Positions 2,458 through 26,347 of a DNA stretch of 64,000 bases are shown in pieces. The DNA is from Phaeosaccion multiseriatum (lineage: Eukaryota; Protista; Ochrophyta, other classes). Location: positions 5,084,001-5,148,000 of the forward strand of contig OZ218952.1 in the NCBI GenBank assembly GCA_965112735.1. Reading direction: 5' to 3'. Each line of letters begins with the position of its first letter. The first letter of the stretch is position 1. Made by a program: the position numbers and the translations under genes. The notes under the pieces were generated by a model, which worked only from the letters and a program-made list of their open reading frames with translations, had not been told where the DNA came from and searched no databases.

Positions 2458-3150
2458 CTGGCGACGATGTGGTTCATCAACTGCTGCAGCCGGGTCCAAA
2501 ATCCAAAATTAAAATTTCTCTCCCCCTCTTGATCCTCTTGCTTGTATTTCAGCAGAGCCACCACGCTTCACCACAAGCTTGACTTTGGCGAGTGCCTAGA
2601 ATAATCGCGGGCCATGCCGAGAACCAAAGGAGAAGGGAAGGGGAGGGGGGGATGACGGAGACGCCAGGCAAAGAAGGCCGTGTCTCAAACGGAGGGTAAG
2701 AGCTATGACCACCAGAGCCCAGTAGAAAGTGGAGGAGGCGATGGTAGGAAGGCAAAGCAAGATGCCCGAACACTCTTGGCGGAGCGGCAGGCGACAATCG
2801 ACGCGCACAACACGTTCGAGAGAGGCGTGTCTGCGGCGAGGGAGGGCCTTCACGACAACGCTGCCCTGTGCTGGTGGCAACCGGAGCACCTACTTTGCCG
2901 TCCGAGCCAAGAGCTACGAGGAGATTGGGGAGAGCAAGAAGGCTTTTTACGACATAACCGGCCGAGGCTATCCGGCTCAATCACGAAAAGGTGATCTGCT
3001 GCCTGCCTCAAGAACCCTTCTTGAAACACAGCCAGCCATGCCGGGACCATCGCCTCTCTAGCTTCGCAAGACGCGGAGGCGTGCAGGCCGCTGGATCCAA
3101 GGGAAGACGGGTGGGTAAGGCAGAGAGAGATTGCGCTTTACTATTAGCTT
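2458..3150 (+). pseudogene. Truncated, internally deleted duplicate of the TPR gene at 23.3-29.7 kb
   Basis: 2458-3068 aligns by eye to ~23282-23890 (upstream region, exon 1, start of intron 1). 3069-3150 aligns to ~28500-28580. The copy contains deletions and frameshifts relative to the intact gene. Confidence 0.9.
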
Positions 3151-4608
3151 CTTGAGGGGGGACTGCGGAGTAGGGCACTCGTTCATGCCACATCGGAAAC
3201 CCGTAGTAAGAGAGGACACTCAACTGGGACACCTAAAAGGCGATTGGCGTAGTGTAGTGCCACTAATGCTTCCAAAGATTCTGAGGGTATTGTTGCACTC
3301 CCCTTGTTACCCACCCCTACCTGGGACGCGTAACCCAAACTGCTCAACTCGGCGATAGAGGCACTGTAGGGGGGGGGGGGGGGGGGAGGGCCCTCTTCGG
3401 CTCCAGACTGGACTATAAACCTAGGCCTAGAGACGAAATGCGGCCGGCCTAGGCGGGCCGCCGGCCGGCCTAGGCCTATTTTTGGCGCAGCCCCCCCGCC
3501 GCTACTAGCTAGCTCCCAGCTCATGGAGCATGTTGTCGAGGAGAAGCGGCAAGGAAAGGGGGCGGGCAAGCGAGGCAGCAAGCTCATCAAGCCGCCAAGG
3601 CCCAAATGCCGGTACTTTGGTCTTGTGGAGAGTGATACCATACCAACACGGACGCTGCCCCTCCTGATGGTGACGTCAGGTACAGGGTTGAATTTACCTC
3701 CGAAAGTCAGTTCCAGGCCTTGTATGGGGATGGTGTTCGATTCGACAAGGCCACTGGGGGCGCAACGAGTACAACGATGGAGGGCTCTAGCATTTCGCAG
3801 GAGCAGTACGACGACTGCCGCACCCTCGTCAACGCAGGGGCGAAGGAGCGGATTCAAGGGGAGGCGCTTCTTGAAGTATGTGGAAAGGCAGCGGGATGAG
3901 TGAGGGTGATGTTGAAAGTGGCATAGTTGGGGTCCCAGCCGAGACCAAACCATAGTAGAGTAACAGCTGTGAATGGAAAGGAAGGAGTGTCTTGGCTTCC
4001 GGGTGCTGGCTTAACATCAGCTTTGCTCTGCTTTAGTTTGGCGCCTTCAGTCTAGCTTGTCGGCGAGGTTCGACAATCCACTCAATGACCCTGGAAGCTT
4101 CCCTTGTTTTTAAGGGTGGCTTTCCAACTGGTCTATACTGGTTCACGGAGTGGGCTCATGACAGAGCCCCTGTATCCTACACACACCTAATCTTACGTAA
4201 GGGGGGTCACTTCACCTCTACCACAGCCCCCCCTTGCCGAGGCACTCAGTGGGGAGGCAAATCACAGCCCACTCAACCGCTAAGTACTGGACGCTAACTT
4301 TATGAAAGTGAAAACAAGTCCAACCAATGGTCGTTTATATGAAAAAGAAAGAAATGCGAAAAAAAACACAACCCCAACCCCAAGCGAACACAATCCAACA
4401 AGAGATGACCCCATTCATGGCACTCGTAGCTACGGTCGTAGAGCTCACTTCTAAACAAGAGCCCTACTAGTCACCAACACCTCCCCATACGTGGGTAGAC
4501 GCCGCCACGCTGAGTCATCCTCTTTCCCAAATACCACCCACTCCCCAGTCCACACAAGTACGTAGCCCTCCCATAGAGCTACGAACCCCAGAGTTGTATG
4601 GCCTCATC

Positions 4609-7600
4609 TTACACTGCAGAGAGGGAAAGTAAGAGAGAGGAGGAGAGAGGAGGAGGACGGTTGTGAGAATAGGTGATGCTATGACACGCACGTCCCCCGC
4701 CCATCCCTCACCATCATCACAAGCATCTCCTTCTCCGTCGTCGTCAAAGTCCTCTTGGCCCGCGTTGGCAACCGCCGGGCAACTACATGGCACATAAGGA
4801 AGAGGGCAATACGGGGCAGGCGGTGGTCGAGTCGCGAGGCACAGTCATCAGTTTCGTTACCAGTGGATAAGCGTACGCTGGCGGACTGCGCAAGACAGAG
4901 AGGTGCTAGCTAAGAGGCAGCGCACGCACGCACACACAAACATGATCAGCAGGGACTGAAGCTGGCATATAGAATGCGCCGCACATGCACATCAGCAAGC
5001 AATGCTCACTCCTCCTCCACCCACTCGGTCCATACTTTCTGAACCACTCACTTGTCTCTAATGGCCACAATGCCGTCCCCGTCGGTGTCTGCATCAGGAG
5101 GGCCGCCACCGCCGCACGAGACGCAAGGGGAGGAGGGGGGTGGGGTTGGCAGAAGCATTTATGTCAGACTGGAAGGCGATGAGTGGGCAGTGACGACAAG
5201 GGAATCCGAGGTGCTCATTTGCCGCGCGAAGAAAAGCAGCGAACGCCGGAGCGAGAGCGACGAGAGGAATGAGCTCAAATCATGCATCCTGCGGGCCCCT
5301 TTTCTCCTCACTATGCATGATTCTCGTTCCTACCTGCACATGGTCCCGTCGAGCCTCTGCCTCCAGCACTTTTGGTGTCGAAGTGTCGCACCGGGCGGGG
5401 TTCACGAGAAAAGAGATTTCACCGCACAACCATAACGTGAGCAACAAAGCGCAACACATTGCAACAAGGGGGGGGGGGGGACGTGAGCGCAACAACTGTG
5501 TGTGGCGGAGAGAAGAGCAGCCAGGCATGTCGGCGACGCACTCCTCGACATGTTGGCCGGCCAACACTCAAACGGGCCGGGGAGCAAAGGGCCTTGTCAA
5601 GTGCTGTGCTTTGCTTGCTACCACTCACCAGGCTTCCCGAATGCAGCATGCTGGGCCAGATTGCTGTGCCTGTTGGTCACAGCCGGGAGTGATAGAGCGT
5701 GCAAAGGAGGTGAGGATCGGTCAGTCATCTTATTACATGGGGTGGTCGGCCTAGGCGTGCACGCATGTCTCCTCGACTCCCCGTTGATCGGGCTGGTCCA
5801 TGTGTGGAGGTCAGGAGAGGGGGGAAGTCTGAAGCGTTGGCCGTGTAGCGATACAACAGGAGCAAGACACACAACCCAAAGCCAGGTGGTGATAGCGAGG
5901 GCGGACTTGGGCCGCACGATTACTCACCGGACAGCGCCTTTCGCCGTTGCAGTTGGCGGCTGAAGTGTCGAAAATCAGGGCACCCTGTGATTGAAGGGGC
6001 GCAAGGCGGGTGTGGATGAGAAAAGGTCAGGCGGCCGCAGGTCAGCAGAGGGATACAGCGGAGGTCAGAAGACGGGGGAAGCTTGAGGCATGGGCCGTGT
6101 AGCGATACGACAGGAGCAAGACACTCGACCCTAAGCCAGATGACAGCGAGAGCGGACATGATCCGCCCGAATACTCACCACACAGGACTCTTGCCCCTCG
6201 CAGGTGGCAATTGAAGTGTCATAAAACTCGGCACCCTGTGATTGAAGGGGCGCAAGGTGGTGTGGATGAGAAAAGACGGCCGCAGGTCAGCAGACGGATA
6301 CGGTGTGGAGGTCAGGAGAGGGGGGAAGCGTGAGGTGAGGGCCGTGTAGCGATACAACAGGAGCAAGGCACTCAACCCTAAGCCTGATGACAGCGAGAGC
6401 GGACATGATCCGCCCGATAACTCACCCCACAGGACCTGTCCCCGGTGCAGGTGGCAGTCGAAGTGTTGTAAAAAATGGCTCGCTGTGATGGAAGAGGCGT
6501 AAGGTGGGGAAGAGAGAAGAGGGCCGCAGGTCAGCAGAGGGATACAGGCAGTGTGGAGGTCAGGAGAGGTGGGAACAAGCTTGAAGTGTGGGCCGTGTAG
6601 CGGTAGGATAGGAGCAAGACACAAAACCCTAAGCCAGGTGGCAGCAGGAGCGGACTTGGGCCTGTGGTGATTAGGTGGCCGCAGGGACCCAAGCCAAGCG
6701 CTAATAATGGCTTAGGTCCCTGGGACAAAAAAAAAAGCGGGGGGGGCAATCCCCCAGTTATACATGTAACCTTTGACCAAAAATGCGCGAGTGGCACTAT
6801 CGGAACACAGCCATACACGTTCCCCGCCCCTGCTGCGGAGTATTGCAATCAATGAAGGTCGAACCCATATGCATACTTTTGTGGTGAATGGCCCCAGGCA
6901 GGGACCTAAGCCATTATTAGCGGCTTATAGTGGCGAAGGTCCCTGAGGCCACCTAACCACCACAGGCCGCACGATTACTCACCAGACAGCCAATTACATC
7001 GCAGGTGGCAGTCGAAGTGTCGTAAAAGTCGGCAAACTGTGATAGAAGGGGCGCAAGGTGGGTGTGGCCGAGAAAAGAGGGCCGCAGATCAGCAGAGGGA
7101 TACAGCGGAGGTCAGAAGACGGGGGAAGTTTGAGGCATGGGCCGTGTAGCGATACAACAGGAGCAAGACACTCAACCCTAAGCCAGATGACAGCGAGAGC
7201 GGACATGATCCGCCCGATTACTCACCCCACAGGAACCTCTCCCCGTGCAGCTGGCAGCCAAATTGTCGTAAAAATCGGTACGCTGTGATTGAAGTGGGGC
7301 CAGAGGGGTATGGACGAGATAAAAAGACCGCAGGTTAGCAGAGGGATTTGTGTGGAGGAGGTCAGGAGATGGGGGAAGCTTGAAGTGTGGGACGTGTAGC
7401 GGTAGGATAGGAGCAAGGCACACAACCCTAAGCCAGGTGGCAGCAGGAGCGGACTTGGGCCGCACGATAACTCACCAAACAGGACAGCAGCCCCGTGCAG
7501 CTGGCCGTCGAAGTGTTGTAAAAATTGGCTTGCTGTGATTGAAGGGGCGCAAGGTGGTGTGGACGAGATCAGAAAGCCGCAGGACAGCAAAGGGATTTGT

Positions 7601-10600
7601 GTGAAGGAGGTCAGGAGATGGGGGAAGCGTGAGGTGTGGGCCGTGTAGCGATACAACAGGAGCAAGACACACAACTCTAATCCAGGTTGCAGCAGGAGCG
7701 GACTTGGGCCGCACGATTACTCACGTGACAGGAGTATTGCCCCGTGCAGCTGACAGTCGAAGTGTTGTAAAAATTGGCATCCTGCGATTGAAGGGGGGGC
7801 AGGGGGGTATGGACGATACAAGAGGGCCGCAGAGGGGTACATTGGGGAGGTCAGCAGAGGGGGAAGCGTGAGGTAAGGGCCACGCAGCGATACAACAGGA
7901 GCGAGACACACAAAGCTAACCCAAATGACAGCGAGAGCGGACCTGGGCCGCACGATTACTCACGTGACAGGAGGATCGCGCCATGCAGCTGGCCACTGAA
8001 GTGTTGTAAAACTCGGCACCCTGTGATTGAAGGGGCGCAAGGTGGTGTGGACGAGATAAGAAAGCCGCAGGACAACAGACAGATACAGCGTGGAGGTCAG
8101 GAGAGGCGGGAAGCTTGAGGTGTGGGCCGTGTAGCGGTAGGATAGGAGCAAGACACACAACCCTAAGCCAGGTGGCAGCAGGAGCGGACTTGGGCCGCAC
8201 GATACTCACCCCACAGCAAAAATCCTTCGTGCAGCCGGCAGTCGAACTGTCGTAAAATTCGGCATCCTGGGATTGAAGGGGCGCAAGGTGGTGTGGACGA
8301 GAAAAGAGGGCCGCAGGACAACAGACGGATACAGCCAGTGTGGAGGTCAGGAGATGGGGGAAGCGTGAGGTGTGGGCCGTGTAGCGATACAACAGGCAGG
8401 AGCGAGACACACAAAGCCAACCCAAATGACAGCGAGAGCGGACCTGGGGCGCCCGATTACTCACGTCACAGGAGTCTTGCCCCTCGCAGCTGGCAGTCGA
8501 AGTGTCGTAAAACTCGGCGTTCTGCAATTGAAGGGGCGCAAGGTGGTGTGGACGAGAAGAGACGGCCGCAGGTCAGCAGACGGATACAGTGTGGAGGTCA
8601 GGAGAGGGGAGAAGCGTGAGGTGTGGGCCATGTAGCGGTAGGATAGGAGCGAGGCACACAAAGCTAACCCAAATGACAGCGAGAGCAGACCTGGGCCGCA
8701 CGATTACTCACCAGACATGAGTCTTGCGCCTTGCAGCTGGCCGTCGAAGTGTTGTAAAACTCGGCACCCTGTGATTGAAGGGGCGCAAGGTGGTGTGGAC
8801 AAGAAAAGAGGGTCGCAGGACAGCAGAGGGGCACATTGCTGAGGTCAGGAGAGGTGGGAAGCTTGAAGCATGGGCCGTGTAGTGATACAACAGGAAGAGA
8901 CACACAAAGCCAACCCAAATGACAGCGAGAGCGGACATGATCCGCCCGATTACTCACCCCACAGGAACCTCTCCCCGTGCAGCTGGCAGTCAAATTGTCG
9001 TAAAACTCGGCTTCCTGCGATTGAAGTGGGGCCAGAGGGGTATGGACGAGATAAAAAGACCGCAGGTCAGCAGAGGGATTTGTGTGGAGGTCAGGAGAGG
9101 TGGGAAGCTTGAAGTGTGGGACGTGTAGCGGTAGGATAGGAGCAAGACACACAACCCTAAGCCAGGTGGCAGCAGGAGCGGACTTGGGCCGCACGATTAC
9201 TCACGTTACAGGACTTTCGCCCCGTGCATTGGGCAGTCGAAGTGTCGTGAAAATTGGCATCCTGTGATGGAACGGGCGCAAAGTGAGTGTGGCCGCAGGT
9301 CAGCAGAGAGGGGTACAGTGTGGAGGTCAGGAGAGGGGGGAAGCGTGAGGTGAGGGCCGCGCAGCGATACAACAGGAGCGAGACACACAAAGCTAACCCA
9401 AATGACAGCGAGAGCGGACCTGGGCCGCACAATTACTCACGTTACAGGACTCTTGCCCTATGCAGCTGGCAGTCGAAAGGCTGTAAAACTCGGCACCCTG
9501 TGATTGAAGGGGCGCAAGGTGGTGTGGACGAGATAAGAAAGCCGCAGGACAACAGACAGATACAGCGTGGAGGTCCGGAGATGGGGGGAAATTTGAGGTG
9601 TGGGACGTGTGGCGATACGATAGGAGCAAGACACACAACCCTAAGCCAGGTGCAGCAGGAGCGGACTTGGGGCGCACGATTACTCACCCCACAGGACGCA
9701 TCCCTCCAGCAGCTGGCAGTCGAAGTGTTGTAACAGACGGATACAGTGTGGAGGTCAGGAGATGGGGGAAGCTTGAGGTGAGGGCCGCGCAGCGATACAA
9801 CAGGAGCGAGACACACAAAGCTAACCCAAATGACAGCGAGAGCGGACCTGGGCCGCACGATTACTCACGTCACAGGAGTCTTGCCCCTTGCAGCTGGCCG
9901 TCGAAGTGTTGTAAAACTCGGCATCCTGTGATTGAAGGGGGGGCAGGGGGGTATGGACGAGACAAGAGGGCCGCAGAGGGGTACATTGGGGAGGTCAGTA
10001 GAGGGGGAAGCTTGAGGTGAGGGCCGCGCAGCGATACAACAGGAGCGAGACACACAAAGCCAACCCAAATGACAGCGAGAGCGGACATGATCCGCCCGAT
10101 TACTCACCCCACAGGAACTTCTCCCCGTGCAGCTGGCAGTCAAATTGTCGTAAAACTCGGCTTCCTGCGATTGAAGTGGGGCCAGAGGGGTATGGACGAG
10201 ATAAAAAGACCGCAGGTCAGCAGAGGGATTTGTGTGGAGGTCAGGAGAGGTGGGAAGCTTGAAGTGTGGGACGTGTAGCGGTAGGATAGGAGCAAGACAC
10301 ACAACCCTAAGCCAGGTGGCAGCAGGAGCGGACTTGGGCCGCACGATTACTCACGTTACAGGACTTTCGCCCCGTGCATTGGGCAGTCGAAGTGTCGTGA
10401 AAATTGGCATCCTGTGATGGAACGGGCGCAAAGTGAGTGTGGCCGCAGGTCAGCAGAGAGGGGTACAGTGTGGAGGTCAGGAGAGGGGGGAAGCGTGAGG
10501 TGAGGGCCGCGCAGCGATACAACAGGAGCGAGACACACAAAGCTAACCCAAATGACAGCGAGAGCGGACCTGGGCCGCACAATTACTCACGTTACAGGAC

Positions 10601-13600
10601 TCTTGCCCTATGCAGCTGGCAGTCGAAAGGCTGTAAAACTCGGCACCCTGTGATTGAAGGGGCGCAAGGTGGTGTGGACGAGATAAGAAAGCCGCAGGAC
10701 AACAGACAGATACAGCGTGGAGGTCCGGAGATGGGGGGAAATTTGAGGTGTGGGACGTGTAGCGATACGATAGGAGCAAGACACACAACCCTAAGCCAGG
10801 TGCAGCAGGAGCGGACTTGGGGCGCACGATTACTCACCCCACAGGACGCATCCCTCCAGCAGCTGGCAGTCGAAGTGTTGTAAAAATGGGCTTGCTGTGA
10901 TTGAAGGGGCGCAAGGTAGGTGTGCACGAGAAAAGAGGGCCGCAGGACAGCAGACGGATACAGTGTGGAGGTCAGGAGATGGGGGAAGCTTGAGGTGAGG
11001 GCCGCGCAGCGATACAACAGGAGCGAGACACACAAAGCTAACCCAAATGACAGCGAGAGCGGACCTGGGCCGCACGATTACTCACGTCACAGGAGTCTTG
11101 CCCCTTGCAGCTGGCCGTCGAAGTGTTGTAAAACTCGGCATCCTGTGATTGAAGGGGGGGCAGGGGGGTATGGACGAGACAAGAGGGCCGCAGAGGGGTA
11201 CATTGGGGAGGTCAGCAGAGGGGGAAGCTTGAGGTGAGGGCCGCGCAGCGATACAACAGGAGCGAGACACACAAAGCCAACCCAAATGACAGCGAGAGCG
11301 GACATGATCCGCCCGATTACTCACCCCACAGGAACTTCTCCCCGTGCAGCTGGCAGTCAAATTGTCGTAAAACTCGGCTTCCTGCGATTGAAGTGGGGCC
11401 AGAGGGGTATGGACGAGATAAAAAGACCGCAGGTCAGCAGAGGGATTTGTGTGGAGGTCAGGAGAGGTGGGAAGCTTGAAGTGTGGGACGTGTAGCGGTA
11501 GGATAGGAGCAAGACACACAACCCTAAGCCAGGTGGCAGCAGGAGCGGACTTGGGCCGCACGATTACTCACGTTACAGGACTTTCGCCCCGTGCATTGGG
11601 CAGTCGAAGTGTCGTGAAAATTGGCATCCTGTGATGGAACGGGCGCAAAGTGAGTGTGGCCGCAGGTCAGCAGAGAGGGGTACAGTGTGGAGGTCAGGAG
11701 AGGGGGGAAGCGTGAGGTGAGGGCCGCGCAGCGATACAACAGGAGCGAGACACACAAAGCTAACCCAAATGACAGCGAGAGCGGACCTGGGCCGCACAAT
11801 TACTCACGTTACAGGACTCTTGCCCTATGCAGCTGGCAGTCGAAAGGCTGTAAAACTCGGCACCCTGTGATTGAAGGGGCGCAAGGTGGTGTGGACGAGA
11901 TAAGAAAGCCGCAGGACAACAGACAGATACAGCGTGGAGGTCCGGAGATGGGGGGAAATTTGAGGTGTGGGACGTGTGGCGATACGATAGGAGCAAGACA
12001 CACAACCCTAAGCCAGGTGCAGCAGGAGCGGACTTGGGGCGCACGATTACTCACCCCACAGGACGCATCCCTCCAGCAGCTGGCAGTCGAAGTGTTGTAA
12101 CAGACGGATACAGTGTGGAGGTCAGGAGATGGGGGAAGCTTGAGGTGAGGGCCGCGCAGCGATACAACAGGAGCGAGACACACAAAGCTAACCCAAATGA
12201 CAGCGAGAGCGGACCTGGGCCGCACGATTACTCACGTCACAGGAGTCTTGCCCCTTGCAGCTGGCCGTCGAAGTGTTGTAAAACTCGGCATCCTGTGATT
12301 GAAGGGGGGGCAGGGGGGTATGGACGAGACAAGAGGGCCGCAGAGGGGTACATTGGGGAGGTCAGCAGAGGGGGAAGCTTGAGGTGAGGGCCGCGCAGCG
12401 ATACAACAGGAGCGAGACACACAAAGCCAACCCAAATGACAGCGAGAGCGGACATGATCCGCCCGATTACTCACCCCACAGGAACTTCTCCCCGTGCAGC
12501 TGGCAGTCAAATTGTCGTAAAACTCGGCTTCCTGCGATTGAAGTGGGGCCAGAGGGGTATGGACGAGATAAAAAGACCGCAGGTCAGCAGAGGGATTTGT
12601 GTGGAGGTCAGGAGAGGTGGGAAGCTTGAAGTGTGGGACGTGTAGCGGTAGGATAGGAGCAAGACACACAACCCTAAGCCAGGTGGCAGCAGGAGCGGAC
12701 TTGGGCCGCACGATTACTCACGTTACAGGACTTTCGCCCCGTGCATTGGGCAGTCGAAGTGTCGTGAAAATTGGCATCCTGTGATGGAACGGGCGCAAAG
12801 TGAGTGTGGCCGCAGGTCAGCAGAGAGGGGTACAGTGTGGAGGTCAGGAGAGGGGGGAAGCGTGAGGTGAGGGCCGCGCAGCGATACAACAGGAGCGAGA
12901 CACACAAAGCTAACCCAAATGACAGCGAGAGCGGACCTGGGCCGCACAATTACTCACGTTACAGGACTCTTGCCCTATGCAGCTGGCAGTCGAAAGGCTG
13001 TAAAACTCGGCACCCTGTGATTGAAGGGGCGCAAGGTGGTGTGGACGAGATAAGAAAGCCGCAGGACAACAGACAGATACAGCGTGGAGGTCCGGAGATG
13101 GGGGGAAATTTGAGGTGTGGGACGTGTAGCGATACGATAGGAGCAAGACACACAACCCTAAGCCAGGTGCAGCAGGAGCGGACTTGGGGCGCACGATTAC
13201 TCACCCCACAGGACGCATCCCTCCAGCAGCTGGCAGTCGAAGTGTTGTAAAAATGGGCTTGCTGTGATTGAAGGGGCGCAAGGTAGGTGTGCACGAGAAA
13301 AGAGGGCCGCAGGACAGCAGACGGATACAGTGTGGAGGTCAGGAGATGGGGGAAGCTTGAGGTGAGGGCCGCGCAGCGATACAACAGGAGCGAGACACAC
13401 AAAGCTAACCCAAATGACAGCGAGAGCGGACCTGGGCCGCACGATTACTCACGTCACAGGAGTCTTGCCCCTTGCAGCTGGCCGTCGAAGTGTTGTAAAA
13501 CTCGGCATCCTGTGATTGAAGTGGGGCAGGGGGGTATGGACGAGACAAGAGGGCCGCAGAGGGGTACATTGGGGAGGTCAGCAGAGGGGGAAGCTTGAGG

Positions 13601-16600
13601 TGAGGGCCGCGCAGCGATACAACAGGAGCGAGACACACAAAGCCAACCCAAATGACAGCGAGAGCGGACATGATCCGCCCGATTACTCACCCCACAGGAA
13701 CTTCTCCCCGTGCAGCTGGCAGTCAAATTGTCGTAAAACTCGGCTTCCTGCGATTGAAGTGGGGCCAGAGGGGTATGGACGAGATAAAAAGACCGCAGGT
13801 CAGCAGAGGGATTTGTGTGGAGGTCAGGAGAGGTGGGAAGCTTGAAGTGTGGGACGTGTAGCGGTAGGATAGGAGCAAGACACACAACCCTAAGCCAGGT
13901 GGCAGCAGGAGCGGACTTGGGCCGCACGATTACTCACGTTACAGGACTTTCGCCCCGTGCATTGGGCAGTCGAAGTGTCGTGAAAATTGGCATCCTGTGA
14001 TGGAACGGGCGCAAAGTGAGTGTGGCCGCAGGTCAGCAGAGAGGGGTACAGTGTGGAGGTCAGGAGAGGGGGGAAGCGTGAGGTGAGGGCCGCGCAGCGA
14101 TACAACAGGAGCGAGACACACAAAGCTAACCCAAATGACAGCGAGAGCGGACCTGGGCCGCACAATTACTCACGTTACAGGACTCTTGCCCTATGCAGCT
14201 GGCAGTCGAAAGGCTGTAAAACTCGGCACCCTGTGATTGAAGGGGCGCAAGGTGGTGTGGACGAGATAAGAAAGCCGCAGGACAACAGACAGATACAGCG
14301 TGGAGGTCCGGAGATGGGGGGAAATTTGAGGTGTGGGACGTGTGGCGATACGATAGGAGCAAGACACACAACCCTAAGCCAGGTGCAGCAGGAGCGGACT
14401 TGGGGCGCACGATTACTCACCCCACAGGACGCATCCCTCCAGCAGCTGGCAGTCGAAGTGTTGTAACAGACGGATACAGTGTGGAGGTCAGGAGATGGGG
14501 GAAGCTTGAGGTGAGGGCCGCGCAGCGATACAACAGGAGCGAGACACACAAAGCTAACCCAAATGACAGCGAGAGCGGACCTGGGCCGCACGATTACTCA
14601 CGTCACAGGAGTCTTGCCCCTTGCAGCTGGCCGTCGAAGTGTTGTAAAACTCGGCATCCTGTGATTGAAGGGGGGCAGGGGGGTATGGACGAGACAAGAG
14701 GGCCGCAGAGGGGTACATTGGGGAGGTCAGCAGAGGGGGAAGCTTGAGGTGAGGGCCGCGCAGCGATACAACAGGAGCGAGACACACAAAGCCAACCCAA
14801 ATGACAGCGAGAGCGGACATGATCCGCCCGATTACTCACCCCACAGGAACTTCTCCCCGTGCAGCTGGCAGTCAAATTGTCGTAAAACTCGGCTTCCTGC
14901 GATTGAAGTGGGGCCAGAGGGGTATGGACGAGATAAAAAGACCGCAGGTCAGCAGAGGGATTTGTGTGGAGGTCAGGAGAGGTGGGAAGCTTGAAGTGTG
15001 GGACGTGTAGCGGTAGGATAGGAGCAAGACACACAACCCTAAGCCAGGTGGCAGCAGGAGCGGACTTGGGCCGCACGATTACTCACGTTACAGGACTTTC
15101 GCCCCGTGCATTGGGCAGTCGAAGTGTCGTGAAAATTGGCATCCTGTGATGGAACGGGCGCAAAGTGAGTGTGGCCGCAGGTCAGCAGAGAGGGGTACAG
15201 TGTGGAGGTCAGGAGAGGGGGGAAGCGTGAGGTGAGGGCCGCGCAGCGATACAACAGGAGCGAGACACACAAAGCTAACCCAAATGACAGCGAGAGCGGA
15301 CCTGGGCCGCACAATTACTCACGTTACAGGACTCTTGCCCTATGCAGCTGGCAGTCGAAAGGCTGTAAAACTCGGCACCCTGTGATTGAAGGGGCGCAAG
15401 GTGGTGTGGACGAGATAAGAAAGCCGCAGGACAACAGACAGATACAGCGTGGAGGTCCGGAGATGGGGGGAAATTTGAGGTGTGGGACGTGTAGCGATAC
15501 GATAGGAGCAAGACACACAACCCTAAGCCAGGTGCAGCAGGAGCGGACTTGGGGCGCACGATTACTCACCCCACAGGACGCATCCCTCCAGCAGCTGGCA
15601 GTCGAAGTGTTGTAAAAATGGGCTTGCTGTGATTGAAGGGGCGCAAGGTAGGTGTGCACGAGAAAAGAGGGCCGCAGGACAGCAGACGGATACAGTGTGG
15701 AGGTCAGGAGATGGGGGAAGCTTGAGGTGAGGGCCGCGCAGCGATACAACAGGAGCGAGACACACAAAGCTAACCCAAATGACAGCGAGAGCGGACCTGG
15801 GCCGCACGATTACTCACGTCACAGGAGTCTTGCCCCTTGCAGCTGGCCGTCGAAGTGTTGTAAAACTCGGCATCCTGTGATTGAAGGGGGGGCAGGGGGG
15901 TATGGACGAGACAAGAGGGCCGCAGAGGGGTACATTGGGGAGGTCAGCAGAGGGGGAAGCTTGAGGTGAGGGCCGCGCAGCGATACAACAGGAGCGAGAC
16001 ACACAAAGCCAACCCAAATGACAGCGAGAGCGGACATGATCCGCCCGATTACTCACCCCACAGGAACTTCTCCCCGTGCAGCTGGCAGTCAAATTGTCGT
16101 AAAACTCGGCTTCCTGCGATTGAAGTGGGGCCAGAGGGGTATGGACGAGATAAAAAGACCGCAGGTCAGCAGAGGGATTTGTGTGGAGGTCAGGAGAGGT
16201 GGGAAGCTTGAAGTGTGGGACGTGTAGCGGTAGGATAGGAGCAAGACACACAACCCTAAGCCAGGTGGCAGCAGGAGCGGACTTGGGCCGCACGATTACT
16301 CACGTTACAGGACTTTCGCCCCGTGCATTGGGCAGTCGAAGTGTCGTGAAAATTGGCATCCTGTGATGGAACGGGCGCAAAGTGAGTGTGGCCGCAGGTC
16401 AGCAGAGAGGGGTACATTGGGGAGGTCAGCAGAGGGGGAAGCTTGAGGTGAGGGCCGCGCAGCGATACAACAGGAGCGAGACACACAAAGCTAACCCAAA
16501 TGACAGCGAGAGCGGACCTGGGCCGCACAATTACTCACGTTACAGGACTCTTGCCCTATGCAGCTGGCAGTCGAAAGGCTGTAAAACTCGGCACCCTGTG

Positions 16601-19600
16601 ATTGAAGGGGCGCAAGGTGGTGTGGACGAGATAAGAAAGCCGCAGGACAACAGACAGATACAGCGTGGAGGTCCGGAGATGGGGGGAAATTTGAGGTGTG
16701 GGACGTGTAGCGATACGATAGGAGCAAGACACACAACCCTAAGCCAGGTGCAGCAGGAGCGGACTTGGGGCGCACGATTACTCACCCCACAGGACGCATC
16801 CCTCCAGCAGCTGGCAGTCGAAGTGTTGTAAAAATGGGCTTGCTGTGATTGAAGGGGCGCAAGGTAGGTGTGCACGAGAAAAGAGGGCCGCAGGACAGCA
16901 GACGGATACAGTGTGGAGGTCAGGAGATGGGGGAAGCTTGAGGTGAGGGCCGCGCAGCGATACAACAGGAGCGAGACACACAAAGCTAACCCAAATGACA
17001 GCGAGAGCGGACCTGGGCCGCACGATTACTCACGTCACAGGAGTCTTGCCCCTTGCAGCTGGCCGTCGAAGTGTTGTAAAACTCGGCATCCTGTGATTGA
17101 AGGGGGGGCAGGGGGGTATGGACGAGACAAGAGGGCCGCAGAGGGGTACATTGGGGAGGTCAGCAGAGGGGGAAGCTTGAGGTGAGGGCCGCGCAGCGAT
17201 ACAACAGGAGCGAGACACACAAAGCCAACCCAAATGACAGCGAGAGCGGACATGATCCGCCCGATTACTCACCCCACAGGAACTTCTCCCCGTGCAGCTG
17301 GCAGTCAAATTGTCGTAAAACTCGGCTTCCTGCGATTGAAGTGGGGCCAGAGGGGTATGGACGAGATAAAAAGACCGCAGGTCAGCAGAGGGATTTGTGT
17401 GGAGGTCAGGAGAGGTGGGAAGCTTGAAGTGTGGGACGTGTAGCGGTAGGATAGGAGCAAGACACACAACCCTAAGCCAGGTGGCAGCAGGAGCGAACTT
17501 GGGCCGCACGATTACTCACGTTACAGGACTTTCGCCCCGTGCATTGGGCAGTCGAAGTGTCGTGAAAATTGGCATCCTGTGATGGAACGGGCGCAAAGTG
17601 GGTGTGGCCGCAGGTCAGCAGAGAGGGGTACAGTGTGGAGGTCAGGAGATGGGGGAAGCTTGAGGTGAGGGCCGCGCAGCGATACAACAGGAGCGAGACA
17701 CACAAAGCTAACCCAAATGACAGCGAGAGCGGACCTGGGCCGCACGATTACTCACGTCACAGGAGTCTTGCGCCTTGCAGCTGGCCGTCGAAGTGTTGTA
17801 AAACTCGGCATCCTGTGATTGAAGGGGGGGCAGGGGGGTATGGACGAGACAAGAGGGCCGCAGGTCAGCAGACGGATACAGTGTGGAGGTCAGAAGACGG
17901 GAGGAGCTTGAGGCGTGGGCCGTGTAGCGATACAACAGGAAGAGACACACAACTCTAAGCCATGTGGCAGCAGGAGCGGACTTGGCCCGCCCGATAACTT
18001 ACACGACAGGACTCTGGCCCCGTGCAGCTGGCCGTCGAAGTGTTGTAAAACTCGGCACCCTGTGATTGAAGTGGCGCAAGGTGGTGTGGACGAGAAAAGA
18101 GGGCCGCAGGACAGCAGAGGGGCACATTGGGGAGATGAGGAGAGGGGGGAGAGCTTGAAGTGTGAGACGTGTAGCGGTACGATAGGGGCAAAATATATCA
18201 GCCAGAAGGGTGTTGACGAGAAATGACGCAGGAGGACAGCAGAGGGACACATGGAAGAGGTTAGGAGAAGGGGCAAGATTGAGGTGTGGGTCGTGTAGCA
18301 GTACGACAGGGCGAAGGGGCGAAAGAGATGAGCAAGTAGCTGCCCGTTAATATGAACTGCCGCACGGAGGCAGCGTCCGGCACACCAAGATCACGACATG
18401 GGCGTGTTTAAAGAGCAGAGGGGGTTCCATGCATGGGTGGGGAGGAGGGGGCAGACAGGGGACAGGTGAGGGGGCAGGAGCTGCAACAACAGTCCTCCTT
18501 ACTCACTTTGCAGCTCCCCGTGTCCGCGCACTCAACGAAGCAAGTCTTCATGGCGGGCCGATAAGGCGAGATGCGCCAAAAGGGGCATATGGCAGCCATG
18601 TCGCGATGAGCAGAGCACGATTAGGGCAGCAGGAGGATGAAAGGGTGAGGGTACCTCTGTGCACACAGGGTAGGACGCAAATGGCACGAGCACGAAGATA
18701 CAATGAAGGAGAAATACAGTGGCCCCCAGCCAGCTAAATCAAAGAAAAACTCAATCGCAATCACCAGGGGATGAGGCCACACTCACAAACACCTTCTCAG
18801 TGCACACGAATCCTCCCCGCCATGCTCCCACGTAGCCAAGTCAAAACTGCCAGCGTAATGACTGCGAACACTTACCTCAAATGTGGCGCCCTGCACACGC
18901 CGAAGAAGCAACGCCATCATAAGCAGAAAGTCAGAACGGGGGTGGCCATGAAGAGCCACAGAGCCACCACAAAGAGGGTGGTGATGAAGCAGCGGCCCGC
19001 CGTGAGGACGATCGGCAGTGAGAAGGGGGGGGAATCAAAGATGACGCCCACACAATCGTTTGAGATGCGCGGTGAGTCACCACCAGGGCATGAGGGAGGC
19101 CCAGCGACAGGCAGCAGAGAAGGAGGGAGGCGGTACAGCGCAAAGGTGAGAAAGGGCGAAGGAATAAAAGTTAGTCTCGTGGCCCCAATCCTCCAAGAGG
19201 CATGACCTCATGAAGGCGTCACCATCAGCCCCAGCCCCACTCCAGCTGTCATGCCCAGCTCTTTGTATAGGTAGCGAGTCAACGACACTATTGGCAGGGG
19301 TACTCTGTACTAATAGGTAGAGGTAGAGCCGAAGTGTCTCTTGTCAGGCAGCTGGCTCTTAATGCAGCGAGAGAGAGCGCGGAGAGTGTTTTATTGGGGG
19401 GAGTCAAGTAGGGTGAGTCAAGTACGGTGAGAAGCTTTGGTGGAAGCTGCGCACCCACCAGGCAGAAGTCGTCCTCACACTTAATCGGAGAAGAGTAGCT
19501 CGTGCAGGTGCATGTGTTGGAGAGAATGTCGTAGGCTCCTCCGCCCGCCAAGCAGGCCGTCCGCATCCTCAGGTCTGAAGGTCATGGAGGATTCAGCAGG

Positions 19601-22443
19601 ATATATAGGTAGACAACAAGGCGCGGAGCAGCAAAGGAGATAAGAAGCACAAAGGGAGTGAGTAGCCCAACGGGGGGGGGGAGGGCGTGAGCGGCACGCC
19701 AGAGTAATTTTGCTTGTATGGCTTCGACATTTACGGCGGGGAAATGATCGAACGGCAGCTCAACCACGGCAGCTGACAAGTATTGATCGCCCTCATTTTA
19801 CCCCGCGGGAGCATGACGCAGCCACGTGTACTTACCGAAAGTGTATGAGTCCTCTGCGGGTGAGGGGAAAGTGCTGGCGTAGAGCTCAGTAGTGCCGTCC
19901 GCGTCGAGGATCTTGAAGCTCGCGCCGTTGATGCGGCCCTTGCATGTCTGGCAATCGAGACGGTTTGTGACCTCGCAGTACGCGATGGGTTGGTCAGCTC
20001 CGCCGGAAAGGCTCAGAGTGAGGCGGCCGGGTTCTCCTGCGTGCCCGTCGGAGTGACAGAAGGTTGTGTCGTCGTCGTCGGTGCATCGAGTGGCAAGAAA
20101 CGTGGAGGGTCTGAAGAGGGAGCTCAAGGTGATGCCGTCTAGCGGAATCTTCGTGCTGCTGCCGCCATCATAACATGCAACTTCAGCCAGATTGAGGATA
20201 CCATCAGGCCCAGGGTTAGTGTCCGCCTGGAGCACTTCAATCACGACCCGCCTGTCAGAGTTAGGGCACATGAGTAGCGAGGGCAGGGCGGGGGGAGGGA
20301 GGGCGCCGACATGTAAGACGGAGACCTCGCATGCGCTGGAGTTGATGGGCTGTCTGCACTTCGACATTTAGGCAGCAGGAGGGGTGGCTCAGTAAGGTGA
20401 GGAGAAAAGGAAGGGGCCATGGGGAGCTCTCCTTCTCAGAGGGGCACTTACTTGCCGGGATCTTGGCACAGGCGAGCAAGCAGAAGAAGAGTGCACAATG
20501 GTCCCAAGGGCAGCCATCCACGGAGCCACCCGAGCGAACGCACATGCGTTCGAAGAGGGAAGGCAATGTGAACAGCCCGTGGGAGGAGAGAATCAACACC
20601 ATCACAGAGGTCCAGACATGAGAACAGGCAAAGAGCAGATGGGAGTGAAACAAGGAGTAGGCGTCATTGTCAGGCGGTGCCCGCGATAGATCAAAGCACA
20701 CAGCCCTGTCGAAGCCGGAGGAGGAGGATAAGGGGGGTGGTACCAGCATACGAAGGGAGAGGGAGGAAAGAGGGCAAAGGAGGAGGAGGGCATGGCATAG
20801 GCTACTCGACAAGGCCAGCACATATGTTCCGCGACTACGGACAGCGCGCAAGTGAGGAGGAGGAGGAGGAGGAGGTAGAGGTGGAGGTGGAGGGGGTGGT
20901 GGTGGTGGTGGTGGTGGTGGTGGTGGAGGAGGAGGAGGAGGAGGAGGAGGTGGAGGAGGAGGAGGAGGAGGAGGAGGAGGAGGAGGAGGAGGAGGAGGAC
21001 CAGGGGGAGGAGGAGGAGGAGCGGGGATGAAGAAAGCGTCTCCCCCTGAAGCCGCACGCGGCCTTTGTGTGTTACCACCACGTCCAACCAAGTCCTCTTC
21101 AGAACACTGAGATCTCCTCACGCACCTTTGCTTCGCTCGCAGATGAAGCCAGCCGCAGGGCCAGGGTCGCTGCAGGGAATATCGCTCCAGCCGGGCAGAA
21201 GGCTGCCTCCGAAGTAATACGAGCCGCAGAGCTGCTTGCCGCGCCAATTGTTCGGCTGGTCTTCCTTCCAGCCCCATTCATCGTCTGTCACCGTTTTGTC
21301 CGCCGTCGCCGTGCCGTCTGCCCATGTGAATGCTGTTTTGCCATTGGCAGTGCCTGGTTCCCGCTCGAAGCTAACCCAGACATGGGCGTTGTTGATATCT
21401 GGGATGAGTCCCTTGACGTAGTCGTCTTCGGTCTGGTCGTTGACGGACACGAGGGCGGCCCCATTCAGCTCACACCGGGCAGTCGCTTGGTCGCGAGTGA
21501 TGCCAGGCTGAGGGACGTAGAAGTACTCCGAGGCCGAAGAGGTGTAGGTATTGCTCTGGGTGAAGTCCACTGCTCAGTGACAGCCACCCATGGTGTGTCA
21601 CAACCATTCGAGGAGTAGGGGCCGCAAGTGAAGCAGGCCGCACGGCAGCAGGAGGAAGACGCGAGCAAAAGGAGGAAGACACGAGTAGCAGCGGAAGGGT
21701 GTGTTGGGGGGCGGGTGAATTCAAATCAGTGGCTTAAGATGAGGTTAGACCAGAAGGGGAAGAGAGGGGGGGGAATACTTGTTGGAGGAGGAGGCGGGGG
21801 AGGAGGATGTGGTGGTGGAAGAGTTGGTGGAGTAGGAGGAGGAGCGAGGTGGAAGAGGATGAAGAGGGCGTTTCCCCCTTAAGCAATGCGCACAATAGTG
21901 TGGTACCGCCACATCCAACCAAGCCCTCTTCAGGCCACTACCTTACGCACCTATGCCTCGCTCGCAGACGAAGCCAACCACGTCAGTGTAGTCGCATGGA
22001 ACATCGCTCCAGCCTTGGTTATCGGTGTCTTCGAGCCAATACGAGCCGCAGAGCTGCGCGTCGCCTCTACTGTTCGGCTGACCGGTCTTCCAGCCCCATG
22101 CATTGGCCCCGTTCACCACCTCGTTCGCCGTCGCCGTGCCATCTGCCCACTTGAACGCTGTTGTGTCGCGGGTGGTGCCTGGGTCACGCTCGAAGCTAAC
22201 CCAGACATGGCCGTTGTTGACACCTTGGAGGAGATCCTTGACGTGATTGTCTTCCTCCTGAGTATTGACGGACACAAGGGCCGCCCCATAGCGCGCACAT
22301 GTGGCAATCGCTTGGTCGCGAGTGACGCCGGCCTGAGGGATGTAAACATGTTCTGAATCACTGGTGCTGTGGGACGTGAATTGCTGACAGACTGCGCGCG
22401 GTGGTGCAGCGAGGCACAACAGCAGAAAAAGGGCCCGACTCAT
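4609..22443 (-). CDS. Secreted multi-lectin protein: signal peptide, 2x C-type lectin, F-type-lectin/F5-8C-like domain, Cys linker, up to 47 exon-encoded 19-aa Cys repeats, TSP type-3 repeat
   Basis: Phase-consistent exons: 22443-21951 (MSRALFLLLCLAA...; CTLD1 with W..GQPN, WSDVPC, GFVCE), 21569-21126 (CTLD2), 20461-20452, 20251-19836 (FCHS...NRLDCQTCKGR), 19574-19459, 18890-18876, 18545-18507, then the 57-nt exon array 18059-5928. Small exons at ~5.7-5.3 kb are unresolved. 5088-5052 + 4782-4712 give [36 protein letters not shown], and the stop is at 4611-4609. No TM segment seen. Confidence 0.8.
5801..18310 (-). repeat. Tandem array of 50 ~245-bp intron+exon units; 5-mer higher-order repeat (1216-1217 bp, or 1149-1150 bp with a 67-bp deletion) in the core and divergent monomers at the edges
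   Basis: The + strand motif TACTCAC (GTGAGTA donor on -) and CTG(T/C)GATTGAAG (CTTCAATC(A/G)CAG acceptor on -) recur 57 nt apart in each unit. Near-identical ORFs recur at 9082, 10232, 11449, 12599, 13815, 14964, 16181 and 17397. Confidence 0.97.
6663..6964. mobile_element. 302-bp MITE with TGT...ACA ends and a GGCC 4-bp target duplication, inserted in an array intron
   Basis: TIRs tgtggtgattaggtggccgcagggacc / ggtccctgaggccacctaaccaccaca. Internal inverted repeat gctaataatggcttaggtccctg / cagggacctaagccattattagc. The empty site ggacttgggccgcacg is present in neighbouring units. GGCC lies at 6659-6662 and 6965-6968. Confidence 0.9.
20855..21020. repeat. (GGA)n/(GGT)n microsatellite in a lectin-gene intron
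   Basis: Directly visible trinucleotide runs. The poly-P/L/E ORFs across them are spurious. Confidence 0.95.
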
Positions 22444-23462
22444 GAAGCCGATCTTCAAAACGAAGAGCAGGGCTGGAGTATGCAGGCTCTCCACGGGCCG
22501 GCACAGCTGCGACGAAAGGGAGACAGAACAAAGGGGGCGGGGGGGGGGGCAAGAAGACAGAGTGTTACGAGCGACAAACAGGCCCAGTAATCCCTGCCCT
22601 GCACGCCCCTCAAATGAATAAAGCAGGAGCCTGCAGGCAATTGGGCGGGCACACCAGAGAGGAGGCAGACAAAGTGCATCGGGATGGAGATATTGTTGAG
22701 CTTGGCACCGTGGACACTTGGTCCTCCAAACAAACATTCCGTCGATATCACGCTTGCAGTCCTTCTCCTTCCCCCCCCTCATGTCAACTCTGTCCTGCCT
22801 GTCCAGCAATGTGTGAATGACGGAAGGTCTGTTGAGATATATGGGCCAAATGTCCACGGTGCCATTCAATCGCTGGGTCCAAACTCAACAGACCTTCCGT
22901 CAATTCCACAGTCACATTGCAGCCATTTCCACGTTGGAGTCTTCTCCTTTTCTTCCCTCATCTCTGTCCTGCCTATCCCGACTTGCTCGCCGCTCCTCAA
23001 ACGCTTATACCTGTCACGTGATTCACTCCGCACCTCGCTCTTCTGTTGCCTCTCTGTCTAAGGAAAGCAAGTCTCTCAATTGTGAATGTCTGGAGATCGG
23101 CCCCAGGCGAGGTTTCTCTGGCTCCAGATAAGCAGAAAGCCGAGAAGCCAGCACTGGCCTGCGGCCAGAAGCCCGAAGCCAGGAGGGGGGTACGGCCCAG
23201 AAGCCAGGAGTCAGAGAACATTGGCAGGTTCTAAGATTCTAAGAAACTACAACGTAGAGAGGGGTAAGCGGGGGCTCACTTCTGGCGACGATGTGGTTCA
23301 TCAACTGCTGCAGCAGGGTCCGAAACTGGCAAAATTTCTCTCTTGTACCATAGCAGACCATAGCAGAGCCACCACGCTCCACCACAAGCTTGACTTTGGC
23401 GAGTGCCTAGAATAATCGCGGGCCATGCCGAGAACCAAAGGAGAAGGGAAGGGGAGGGGGTG

Positions 23463-26347
23463 ATGACGGTGACAGCCAGGCAAACAAGGCCGTGTCTCAA
23501 ACAGAGGGTAAGCGCCATGACCACCAGAGCAGTAGAAAGTGGAGGAGGCGGGGATAGTAGGAAGGCAAAGCAAGATACCCGAACACTCTTGGCGGAGCGG
23601 CAGGCGACAATCGACGCGCACAACACGTTCGAGAGAGGCGTGTCTGCGGCGAGCGAGGGCCTTCACGACAACGCTGTGCTCCTCTTCACCAAGGCCATAG
23701 ATACCTGCGGTGGCAACCGGAGCACCTACTTTGCCGCCCGAGCCAAGAGCTACGAGGAGATTGGGGAGAGCAAGAAAGCTTTCTACGACTTAACCGAGGC
23801 TATCCGGCTCAATCACAGAAAGGTGATCTGTTGTCTCAACCCTTCTTGAAACACAGCCATGCCGGGAGCATCGCCTCTCTCGCTTCGCATACACCGACTG
23901 ACACTCCTCTCTTCCGTCCGGCGTCCCTGCTGCATCACCCCTCCCTCCTCAATTCACCTCAAGTCGATGTACTTCTTCCTCCGCGGCACGAGCTTGCTCA
24001 AGCTGGGGCTCCCCGAGGACGCCCTCCTGGACCTCGCCAAGGCGTGTCGGATGGAGCCGGGCAAATCCACCTTCCACTTCAGCAGAGCAACCACGCTGCA
24101 CCACAGACTACACAGGTATTGTGCGGTGCGAGAAGAGGGGAGCCCTCGCCTTCATTCGATGCATTGCTTTGCTCGTGTCTACTCGTCTCTGACTGTCTCT
24201 TCTGTCTCTGTCTGTCTCTGTCTCTGTCTCTTTCCCCCACTCTCCTAACCTGGTGGCGCAGACACAGGGAGGCGAGGGAGGCGTACGGCGCGGCCATGGC
24301 CAGTGCGGGGAGATACGACTTAGCTCTGAAGGCGCGCTGCCTCCACTCGAGGGGGGTGTGCAACTTCGAGGTGAGGCCCCAGGCGGTACATAGAGCGACT
24401 CCGGGGGGGAGGGGGAGGGTGATGAGAGGAGGGGGGAGCGAGGCTAAACTCACATACACACTTGCACAGAAAGATAGAGATGAGGGAGAGAGAGAGGGGG
24501 GGGGAAGGGCTGGCCCTACTGCGCATGGAACGGACCCTTACCCGTGCCCAACCGCCAACAATCGACCACTCTTCCCTCCTCCCCTCCCCTCCTTAACCCT
24601 CTCCTCAGATCGGCAGGAGCGACTCTGCCAAGGTGGACTTGGAGGAGGCCCTCAAGCACTCATCGCACGGCCTGGGCTTCCCTCGCAGCGAGACGATGCT
24701 CTGCCTGGCCCGCGTGAGCGTTGACCTTGGCCTACACAAGACCGCAGAGCGCTTGCTCAGGGAGGTGGTGCAAGTACACAGGGACGCCGCCCAGGCAGGT
24801 GAGTGAGGGAGGGAGTGAGGGAGCGAGAGAGTAAGTGAGTGAGCGAGTGAGTGAGTGAGTGAGTGAGTGAGTGAGTGAGTGAGTGAGTGAGTGAGTGAGT
24901 GAGTGAGTGAGTGAGTGAGTGAGTGAGTGAGTGAGTGAGTGAGTGAGTGAGTGAGTGAATGAGTGAGGGAGTGAGTGAATGAGTGAGGGAGTGAGTGAGT
25001 GAGGGAGTGAGTGAGTGAGTGAGAGAGTGAGTGAGTGAGTCAGTGAGCGAGTGAGTGAGTGAGTGAGTGAGTGAACGAGTGAGTGAGTGAGTGAGTGAGT
25101 GAGTGAGTGAGTGAGTGAGTGAGTGAGTGAGTGAGTGAGTGAGTGAGTGAGTGAGTGAGTGAGTGAGTGAGTGAGTGAGTGAGTGAGTGAGTGAGTGAGT
25201 GAGTGAGTGAGTGAGTGAGTGAGTGAGTGAGTGAGTGAGTGAGTGAGTGAGTGAGTGAGTGAGTGAGTGAGTGAGTGAGTGAGTGAGTGAGTAAGTGAGT
25301 GAGTGAGTGAGTGAGTGAGCAGCGGCATAGCACGGGGCCACCACTGTCTTGGGCTTCGCTCAGGGAGAGGCCGCAGAGCAGGGCAGGTCATCCTTCCCCA
25401 CGCCGATAAAAGAGCGGCAGCCTTCACATACACCTCCCTCTAGGGGAAGGGCTAGACTCTGATGGTGCTGCCCCAGAGCTGTCGCAGAGCTGTCGTAGAG
25501 CTACCCCAGAGCTGTCCCTGGCCCGACTAAAGCCCTCTTGCTAACCCCACCTTCTTTTTCCTTTCCCCTGTCTTCCTCCCCGCACCTCCCCTGGAGCAGA
25601 CGAAGCCGCGGCGGACGCTCTGTTCGAGCTCGGGGCTCTGCTCTTCGAGGAGGGCGGGAGGGACACGGAGAGTGTGGCGTGCTTCACCGAGGCTATCGAG
25701 GTGTCCAAGGAGTGGGCGCGTGCATTGGGCGTGGGGGAAAGCAATGCGCACAACGCAAAGTACTTTGTGCATCGGGGCAAGGCGCGCTCGAGGCTCGCGC
25801 TGGAGGTGGGTACGGTTCCCTTATGACGGTTACGGCAGTTACGGCCTGTGGTCCAGACCTTGGTGTTTTCACGTTTACAGCTCGGCTGAGGCGGTTGGTG
25901 CTTGGACGGCTGAGGCAGCTGACGCAACTGAGGCATCTGTGGCAGCTGTGGCAGCTGAGGTAGCTGTGGAAGCTGTGGCAGCTTGGCTTTACTGAGCAGC
26001 AGACCGGGGTAGGGGGTGCACAGGCTTTGCCCTGGGCAGGGCTCTGCCACGCACAGGCTTCGAGGTCAATGAATAAGCAAACTGAAACTGAAACTGAAAC
26101 TCGAAGTCACTTGTGCGTGCGCTGCGCAGGTCAATGCCGGTCTGGAGGAGGCCCTGGCGGATATTAAGGTGGCGCTGGGCCTGTCTGCGCGGGATAGAGC
26201 GACGCCCAACCCAGAGTTCCAGTACACAGCGGCACTGCTCTACGCCCGACTTGGGCACTTCGAGCAGGCACTAGGCCTGTTCGAGGAGGTCATTGCCTTC
26301 AGGGAGGAGGAGGAGCGGGAGGAAAGGGAGGGGCAGCAGTTGGTAGT

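Follow-up and report, generated by a model that had tools for sequence, protein, structure and literature searches.

Repeat exons of a putative multi-lectin gene of Phaeosaccion multiseriatum keep a two-cysteine scaffold and vary at six codons

Introduction

A 64,000-nucleotide stretch of the genome of the ochrophyte alga Phaeosaccion multiseriatum (GenBank assembly GCA_965112735.1, contig OZ218952.1, positions 5,084,001 to 5,148,000; hereafter the window, G000:C3:5084001-5148000 of the 67-Mb, 22-contig assembly) contains a 247-bp tandem repeat that spans positions 5802-18162. On the minus strand, the repeat reads as an array of short exons of nearly constant length separated by introns, and the exons differ among themselves more than the introns do. 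The question raised by this locus is what makes the coding part of a tandem repeat its more variable part. The first-pass annotation of the array had proposed purifying selection on a scaffold together with diversifying selection on a loop, with the loops predicted to stack as one binding face. The measurements presented here support, with caveats that are weighed below, selection that keeps the scaffold and favours change at six codons of the repeat.

Organization of the repeat array

The array runs from position 18059 to 5928 and comprises 47 intact exons bounded by (C/T)AG and GT(G/A)AG. The length of every exon is a multiple of three (57 nt in 46 exons and 54 nt in one), and all exons share one reading frame and are phase-0/phase-0, with one 19-residue repeat per exon. 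The array introns are rich in pyrimidines and about 190 nt long (178–198 nt). Units 1–35 (9015..18059, minus strand) consist of two outer units, followed by approximately seven copies of a five-unit higher-order repeat, and include three dead cassettes. Units 36–47 (5928..9014, minus strand) are divergent edge units, with eleven exons of 57 nt and the single exon of 54 nt, located at 7036-6983. The shorter exon carries an exact 3-nt deletion (FADFYDTSTATCDVIGCL) and is the lone exception to the 57-nt length, as had been noticed in the first-pass annotation.

The dead cassettes at 14421-14465, 12055-12099, and 9688-9732 are each located inside a 371-nt intron (after 14602, 12236, and 9869, respectively). 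Each of them has lost 66 bp, a deletion that took the acceptor site together with 13 nt at the start of the exon. Only these acceptor-less cassettes are truncated; all 47 other units keep AG/GT and an open frame. The figure of 50 units, given in the first-pass annotation, is reached if the dead cassettes are counted; 47 units are intact, and only 18 are independent. Units 3–36 are recent, near-identical copies (about seven) of the five-unit higher-order repeat, and the 18 non-redundant units, defined at 3% divergence, form the sample for the comparisons of units described below.

Length changes are kept out of the exons. The introns of the 18 non-redundant units contain 22 distinct indel events, 17 of which are not a multiple of three, and the exons contain one event of exactly 3 nt (P = 0.019 at the intron indel density). 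The intron between units 44 and 45 (6982-6483) additionally harbors a 310-bp insertion at 6659..6968, unassigned to a strand, which resembles a miniature inverted-repeat transposable element (MITE). It has 38-nt terminal inverted repeats (6659-6696 and 6931-6968) that are 87% complementary, with a perfect 24-nt inner pair nested in them, and at least one more copy, 80% identical, is present at G000:C1:1772605-1772793. The earlier description of introns with small indels and a MITE next to exons of constant length thus stands.

The intron between the cap exon that precedes the array and unit 1 (window 18060-18506, minus strand) contains about two degenerate, exon-less copies of the array intron, which may be remnants of lost units. 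The plus strand of window 6000-20000 has a GC skew of 0.22–0.24 and an AT skew of 0.27–0.30, attributable to the pyrimidine-rich introns of the minus-strand gene.

Conserved and variable residues of the repeat unit

The consensus of the 19-residue unit is x-A-x-F-Y-(N/D)-T-S-T-A-S-C-x-G-x-x-S-C-x. The two cysteines, C12 and C18, have the spacing C-x5-C and are invariant, S17 is nearly fixed, and A2, F4, and Y5 are kept in 17, 17, and 16 of the 18 non-redundant units, respectively, in agreement with the invariant cysteines and nearly invariant A-x-F-Y frame of the first-pass annotation. All the inter-cysteine strings that it quoted (NGER, EGQE, TGDR, TGLL, TGQY, MARS, TKDF, KAQD, WRDA, and IGQE) are present in the array, as are the last residues P, V, G, L, H, D, N, and R. 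An N-x-S/T sequon, which had been ascribed to many units, is found in 26 of the 47 (10 of the 18 non-redundant ones).

In the order of the chain, the conserved A2 and F4 are interspersed with the variable positions 19, 1, and 3, and the variable positions 13, 15, and 16 are located inside the C-x5-C loop. The variable half of the unit is therefore contiguous, from position 13 to position 3 of the next unit, and the conserved half, from F4 to C12, bears the sequon. Such a contiguous variable half would be in keeping with units stacked into a solenoid or rod, one side of which varies. The repeat may be compared, as a lead only, with the antifreeze protein of Tenebrio molitor, a disulfide-braced beta-solenoid with 12-residue coils and a cysteine pair six residues apart. 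Both have short regular repeats, cysteines six residues apart, and strands rich in Thr, Ser, and Ala, whereas the coil is 12 residues long in the antifreeze protein and would be 19 in the array, and the two share no sequence similarity.

The profile of the 18 exons retrieved just two chance matches of 8–9 residues, with E above 1, from the PDB sequences. The consensus contains neither a leucine-rich repeat (LRR) nor a tetratricopeptide repeat (TPR) pattern, and single exons with two read-through residues had no match in Pfam at E ≤ 10. Searches of metagenome contigs with the degenerate pattern F-Y-(N/D)-T-S-T-A-S-C-x-G gave three matches, none with a repeat array. A 218-residue open frame that spans three exons together with two introns (7919-8572 of the window, minus strand) retrieved no protein of 120–381 residues at E ≤ 0.01.

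Six codons change faster than the introns

The mean pairwise diversity is 0.17–0.19 in the introns and 0.27 in the exons. Codons 1, 3, 13, 15, 16, and 19 reach 0.45–0.66, at all three codon positions, and none of 188 sliding intron triplets is as diverse as any of them (intron maximum 0.44). All four bases occur in 12 of the 57 exon columns and in 5 of the 190 intron columns. In the pairs u06/u39 and u07/u40, the flanking introns differ by 5% and the exons by 25%; the nonsynonymous changes number about 13 and 12 and the synonymous ones 1 and 2, respectively (Fisher p 2e-5 and 3e-5). In the series u04 / u36 / u43, the nonsynonymous changes build up stepwise.

The ratio of nonsynonymous to synonymous divergence (dN/dS), calculated according to Nei and Gojobori, is 1.37 for the whole exon, and the dN of the six variable codons is 1.15 against an exon dS of 0.27. 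Codon models M0, M1a, and M2a were written in Python and run on exon, unit, and intron topologies. The M0 omega is 2.1–2.3, and M2a is favored over M1a with a doubled log-likelihood difference (2dlnL) of 69–78 on the three topologies, which select the same six codons at P>0.99. The selected class of M2a comprises 32% of the sites, with an omega of about 9. Comparing per-site diversity in exons and introns and running site models on non-redundant exons were the checks suggested in the first-pass annotation; the former bears out its proposal, and the latter does so with a test that a control showed to be inflated on this array, as described below.

Rates were also compared with branch lengths fixed to the tree of the flanking introns. 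Compared with the introns, synonymous changes accumulate 1.05 times as fast overall and 1.09 times as fast within the variable codons, and nonsynonymous changes at the six variable codons about 5.7 times as fast. Evolution is slower at the seven core codons (2, 4, 5, 10, 12, 17, and 18), with 0.40 times the intron rate. Their silent sites are also slow, at 0.26 times the intron rate, so part of the core conservation acts at the DNA level. The six intermediate codons, at about 1.5–1.7 times the intron rate, look neutral. The proposed combination of a purified scaffold and a diversifying loop is supported for the scaffold and for half of the variable positions; the other half (1, 3, and 19) is located outside the inter-cysteine loop.

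Between repeats, the six codons differ about five times more than either the introns or the silent sites, a sign of selection for a varied surface. Hypermutation targeted to the exons was considered and rejected, since the silent sites change at the intron rate. The silent rate within the variable codons also argues against homogenization of the introns only. The absence of stop codons from the variable codons is uninformative, with 1.4 expected.

Paralogous arrays

A profile of the exons detected the 19-residue repeat at at least 12 other loci on at least 10 contigs. A three-unit array is located 80 kb from the window. The paralogous array on contig C7 (G000:C7:1534046-1538901, plus strand) is built of 232-nt units with 57-nt exons, shares the scaffold of the array in the window, and has its variation concentrated at codons 1, 3, 5, 15, 16, and 19. 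Over the final 110 nt, its introns are almost identical. Exons with several repeats were sought among the paralogues, and all exons contain one repeat each.

The C7 array is organized in two blocks with other sequence between them, at 4046-4798 and 7901-8901 of G000:C7:1530001-1540000 (plus strand). Its inter-cysteine loop (S-G/A-E-x-S) is far less varied than that of the array in the window.

Controls and competing explanations

Several points weigh against selection for change at the six codons, or against the wider picture built on it, and are considered here together with the explanations that they could favor. Five 57-nt pseudo-exons assembled from intron columns were run through the same M1a/M2a pipeline and gave a 2dlnL of 1.5–15.6 and an M0 omega of 0.5–1.9, and three of the five passed the nominal threshold. 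The site-model test is thus inflated on this array, through variation of rates among sites and recombination, and the nominal chi-square p of the exons (about 1e-16) was not accepted at face value. The 2dlnL of the exons is 4.5 times that of the worst intron control. Furthermore, the six codons used in the pooled tests were chosen after the data had been seen.

The divergence of the exons is uncorrelated with that of their flanking introns (Spearman rho of about 0.05 for nonsynonymous, synonymous, and scaffold changes). It follows that no single tree describes the units, that the rate ratios are approximate, and that the conclusion leans on average and tree-free comparisons. The introns are recombinant mosaics of two or three haplotypes, pointing to frequent recombination within introns.

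These results could be taken to mean that there is no adaptive signal at all. The six positions would then be unconstrained, and omega values above 1 would arise from recombination, multi-nucleotide mutations, variation of rates among sites, and a neutral yardstick set too low by introns that are constrained or homogenized. The nominal passing of three of the five pseudo-exons, the lack of a single tree that fits the units, and the small sample of 18 units by 19 codons are all in line with this explanation. However, neutral sites cannot outrun the neutral rate, and the six codons exceed every intron triplet and are about fourfold above the silent sites of the exons. The margin of the exon 2dlnL over the worst control and the variation of nearly the same positions in the independent C7 array also speak against it, and we consider the lack of any adaptation very unlikely.

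Recent changes give no separate sign of acceleration. The recent higher-order copies contain segregating sites at 1 of 285 exon positions and 11 of 950 intron positions, with no exon excess, and these counts are too few to show ongoing acceleration. The sole exon site is a Ser-to-Gly change at the hypervariable codon 16. All comparisons are among units of the genome's own arrays, within which ongoing adaptation and old, maintained differences are not separable.

An explanation of the latter kind is that the units are old, functionally distinct repeats that are merely kept distinct. After an ancient divergence, recombination and gene conversion would homogenize the introns and the scaffold, and purifying selection would reject the conversions that erase loops, so diversity would be maintained with no arms race. 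Mosaic introns derived from few haplotypes, the decoupled divergence of exons and introns, and the missing exon excess in the recent copies would all be accounted for, as would a nonsynonymous difference of the variable codons that is already 0.5–0.6 in those pairs whose introns are most alike. The slow silent sites of the core are as expected from co-conversion. Nevertheless, if the variable codons were ancient, silent sites linked to them within 57 nt of exon would be expected to appear older than the introns, whereas they change at the intron rate both in the exon and within the variable codons, and the stepwise accumulation of nonsynonymous changes in u04 / u36 / u43 also disagrees with a set of differences that is only maintained. 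Maintenance of old repeats is unlikely in our view.

The splicing and expression of the array exons are deduced from the genome sequence, and the terms surface and one face reflect solely the in/out pattern of residues along the chain. The first of these points would suit an array outside any expressed gene. Such an array might be satellite-like, either in decay or amplifying selfishly, or it might be an artefact of the assembly, and would in either case still look coding. The absence of the product at ≥50% identity from a library of 1.84 billion representative proteins, the co-amplification of dead cassettes with live ones, and the very recent copying of 34 of the 47 units are compatible with such an origin. 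It is contradicted by the intact acceptor/donor pairs and frames of all 47 units, by the invariant cysteine codons next to nearly saturated ones, and by the exclusion of indels from the exons. The upstream lectin exons, described below, are in phase and include a signal peptide, and many loci retain this exon design, so that an array without a gene is highly improbable.

Gene layout

The array is preceded on the minus strand by exons that may encode the N-terminal part of the same protein. Exon 1 (21951..22443) is an open reading frame with a start codon, a hydrophobic, signal-peptide-like N-terminus, and the first C-type lectin domain (Pfam PF00059, E 2.5e-12), and ends with a phase-1 donor. 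The second C-type lectin domain (PF00059, E 3.4e-10) is encoded by an exon at 21126..21569, which has a phase-1 acceptor and donor and is in frame with exon 1. Both lectin domains pass the gathering threshold of 22.6 bits, with scores of 47.9 and 41.1 bits. The next exon (20854..21045) encodes a poly-proline (mucin/HRGP-like) linker and continues the frame of the second lectin exon through a phase-1 acceptor; the proline run on the minus strand corresponds to (GAG)56 on the plus strand. These three exons are joined in phase 1.

A further exon (19836..20251, minus strand) encodes a putative discoidin-like (F5/8 type C / NedA-like galactose-binding) domain, as suggested by its relatives. The domain itself has no direct Pfam match at E ≤ 0.1. 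Its 89 relatives in the library of 1.84 billion representative proteins were identified by phmmer (E down to 5e-28; best identity 34%), and four of the six top relatives that were scanned carry PF00754/PF22633. None of the 89 relatives carries the 19-residue repeat. With the best relative only 34% identical and devoid of the repeat, the gene product itself is not in the library. Directly before the array, a degenerate cap repeat, read from the sequence, ends in ...CADTGSCK at a GTGAGT donor in phase 0 (18507..18590, minus strand, putative 5' boundary).

Downstream of the array, candidate 3' exons at 4683..5158 (minus strand) contain Asp-rich D-x-D-x-D-G motifs, seen by eye, which resemble thrombospondin type 3 repeats. 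They score 10.3 bits (E 0.57) against Pfam TSP_3 (PF02412), below the cutoff of 25. Neither the upstream domains nor the candidate 3' region includes a recognizable ROC-COR GTPase, kinase, or NB-ARC module, and an Rfam scan of window 4000-23000 gave no match.

The lectin locus, about 20.8 kb long, is bracketed by direct repeats: a duplicate of approximately 530 bp, mostly more than 90% identical, is located at 2540-3070 and 23370-23890 of the window (plus strand). The duplicate is part of a TPR-like coding sequence. Its right copy runs on into a longer open reading frame, and its left copy is fragment-like, with a 23-nt gap and other indels. A (GTGA)130 microsatellite is present at 24799-25319, and many other long simple repeats occur throughout the window.

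Discussion

Taken as a whole, the locus is probably best described as the gene of a secreted multi-lectin protein whose repeat exons have grown in number by crossing-over and are under selection at six positions. According to this reading, 5928-9014 would be the 3' part of a region of 47 repeat exons in one minus-strand gene. The product would be a secreted, probably glycosylated protein that starts with the signal peptide, continues with the two C-type lectin domains, the proline linker, and the discoidin-like domain, and ends with the repeats as a long C-terminal region. Each 57-nt phase-0/phase-0 exon would contribute one 19-residue unit, and unequal crossing-over in the introns of about 190 nt may have copied and shuffled whole repeats while leaving the frame intact. 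Selection would retain the two cysteines and an A/F/Y/A/S core and favor amino-acid change at positions 19, 1, and 3, around the exon junction, and 13, 15, and 16, in the C-x5-C loop. Stacking of the units would give a disulfide-braced solenoid or rod, with the six positions forming a long variable surface beside a conserved side that bears the sequons. The variable surface may serve in recognition or adhesion, for example of microbes, mates, or matrix.

The design of the array has a precedent in brown algae. The LRR-ROCO and NB-ARC-TPR candidate immune receptors of Ectocarpus and kelp have one 72-nt exon per LRR, exon shuffling, and inactivated exons in introns (Zambounis et al. 2012, PMC3341825; Teng et al. 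2024, PMC11378527). Positive selection acts on their concave face, and their repeat exons are alternatively spliced (PMC3341825; PMC11378527). The exon-cassette design, in which every repeat has its own exon, introns contain dead exons, and positive selection acts, has therefore already been published for the brown-alga LRR/TPR receptors. The array described here shares with them a fixed-length repeat exon (57 nt here and 72 nt there) between introns of the same phase, tandem duplication and shuffling of exons, inactivated repeat exons within introns (the three truncated cassettes), and positive selection placed by site models on a few positions of the repeat, with a test that is inflated on this array.

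Unlike the brown-alga receptors, the array encodes an orphan 19-residue two-cysteine unit, which is neither an LRR nor a TPR. It accompanies a signal peptide and lectin domains, which presumably make the protein extracellular, and no ROC-COR or NB-ARC module was seen with it. The brown-alga LRR exons are phase 2 (PMC11378527), whereas the exons here are phase 0, and alternative splicing has been shown for the brown-alga receptors, whereas the array is known from genomic sequence alone. The locus thus falls outside the brown-alga LRR-ROCO / NB-ARC-TPR family.

A conserved scaffold in which each repeat has a few rapidly changing positions, recurring along a stack, is also characteristic of the LRRs of plant R genes and PGIPs and of the lamprey VLRs (discussed in PMC3341825); in the array, such stacking would fit the residue pattern. 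The lamprey VLRs are assembled somatically from cassettes, whereas nothing at this locus suggests somatic change. Dscam-type arrays (mentioned in PMC11378527) likewise consist of tandemly duplicated, frame-neutral exons for variable recognition modules, a role that the repeats here may share. Exons of Dscam are mutually exclusive, with one used per cluster, whereas the simplest reading of the array is that all its exons are constitutive and encode repeats that follow one another. Every exon of the array is frame-neutral, so regulated skipping or choice would give many isoforms. A combinatorial recognition device, in which such skipping or choice among the 47 exons would produce many lectin-linked extracellular isoforms with different stacked variable surfaces, immune-like or for self/non-self discrimination, and built in a stramenopile alga from a cysteine repeat not described before, is a doubtful extension to which we give little probability.

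A practical lesson of the analysis is that, when site models are applied to tandem repeat exons, pseudo-exons taken from the introns are needed as a control. If the reading of the locus is true, it provides a concrete case of tandem exon duplication and selection building variable surfaces. The exon-cassette design with hypervariable positions, known so far from the cytoplasmic LRR and TPR receptors of brown algae, would extend in this genome to a different, new repeat in a secreted multi-lectin protein. The spread of the repeat across a dozen or more loci would then point to a large, fast-evolving repertoire for extracellular recognition or adhesion in this algal lineage.

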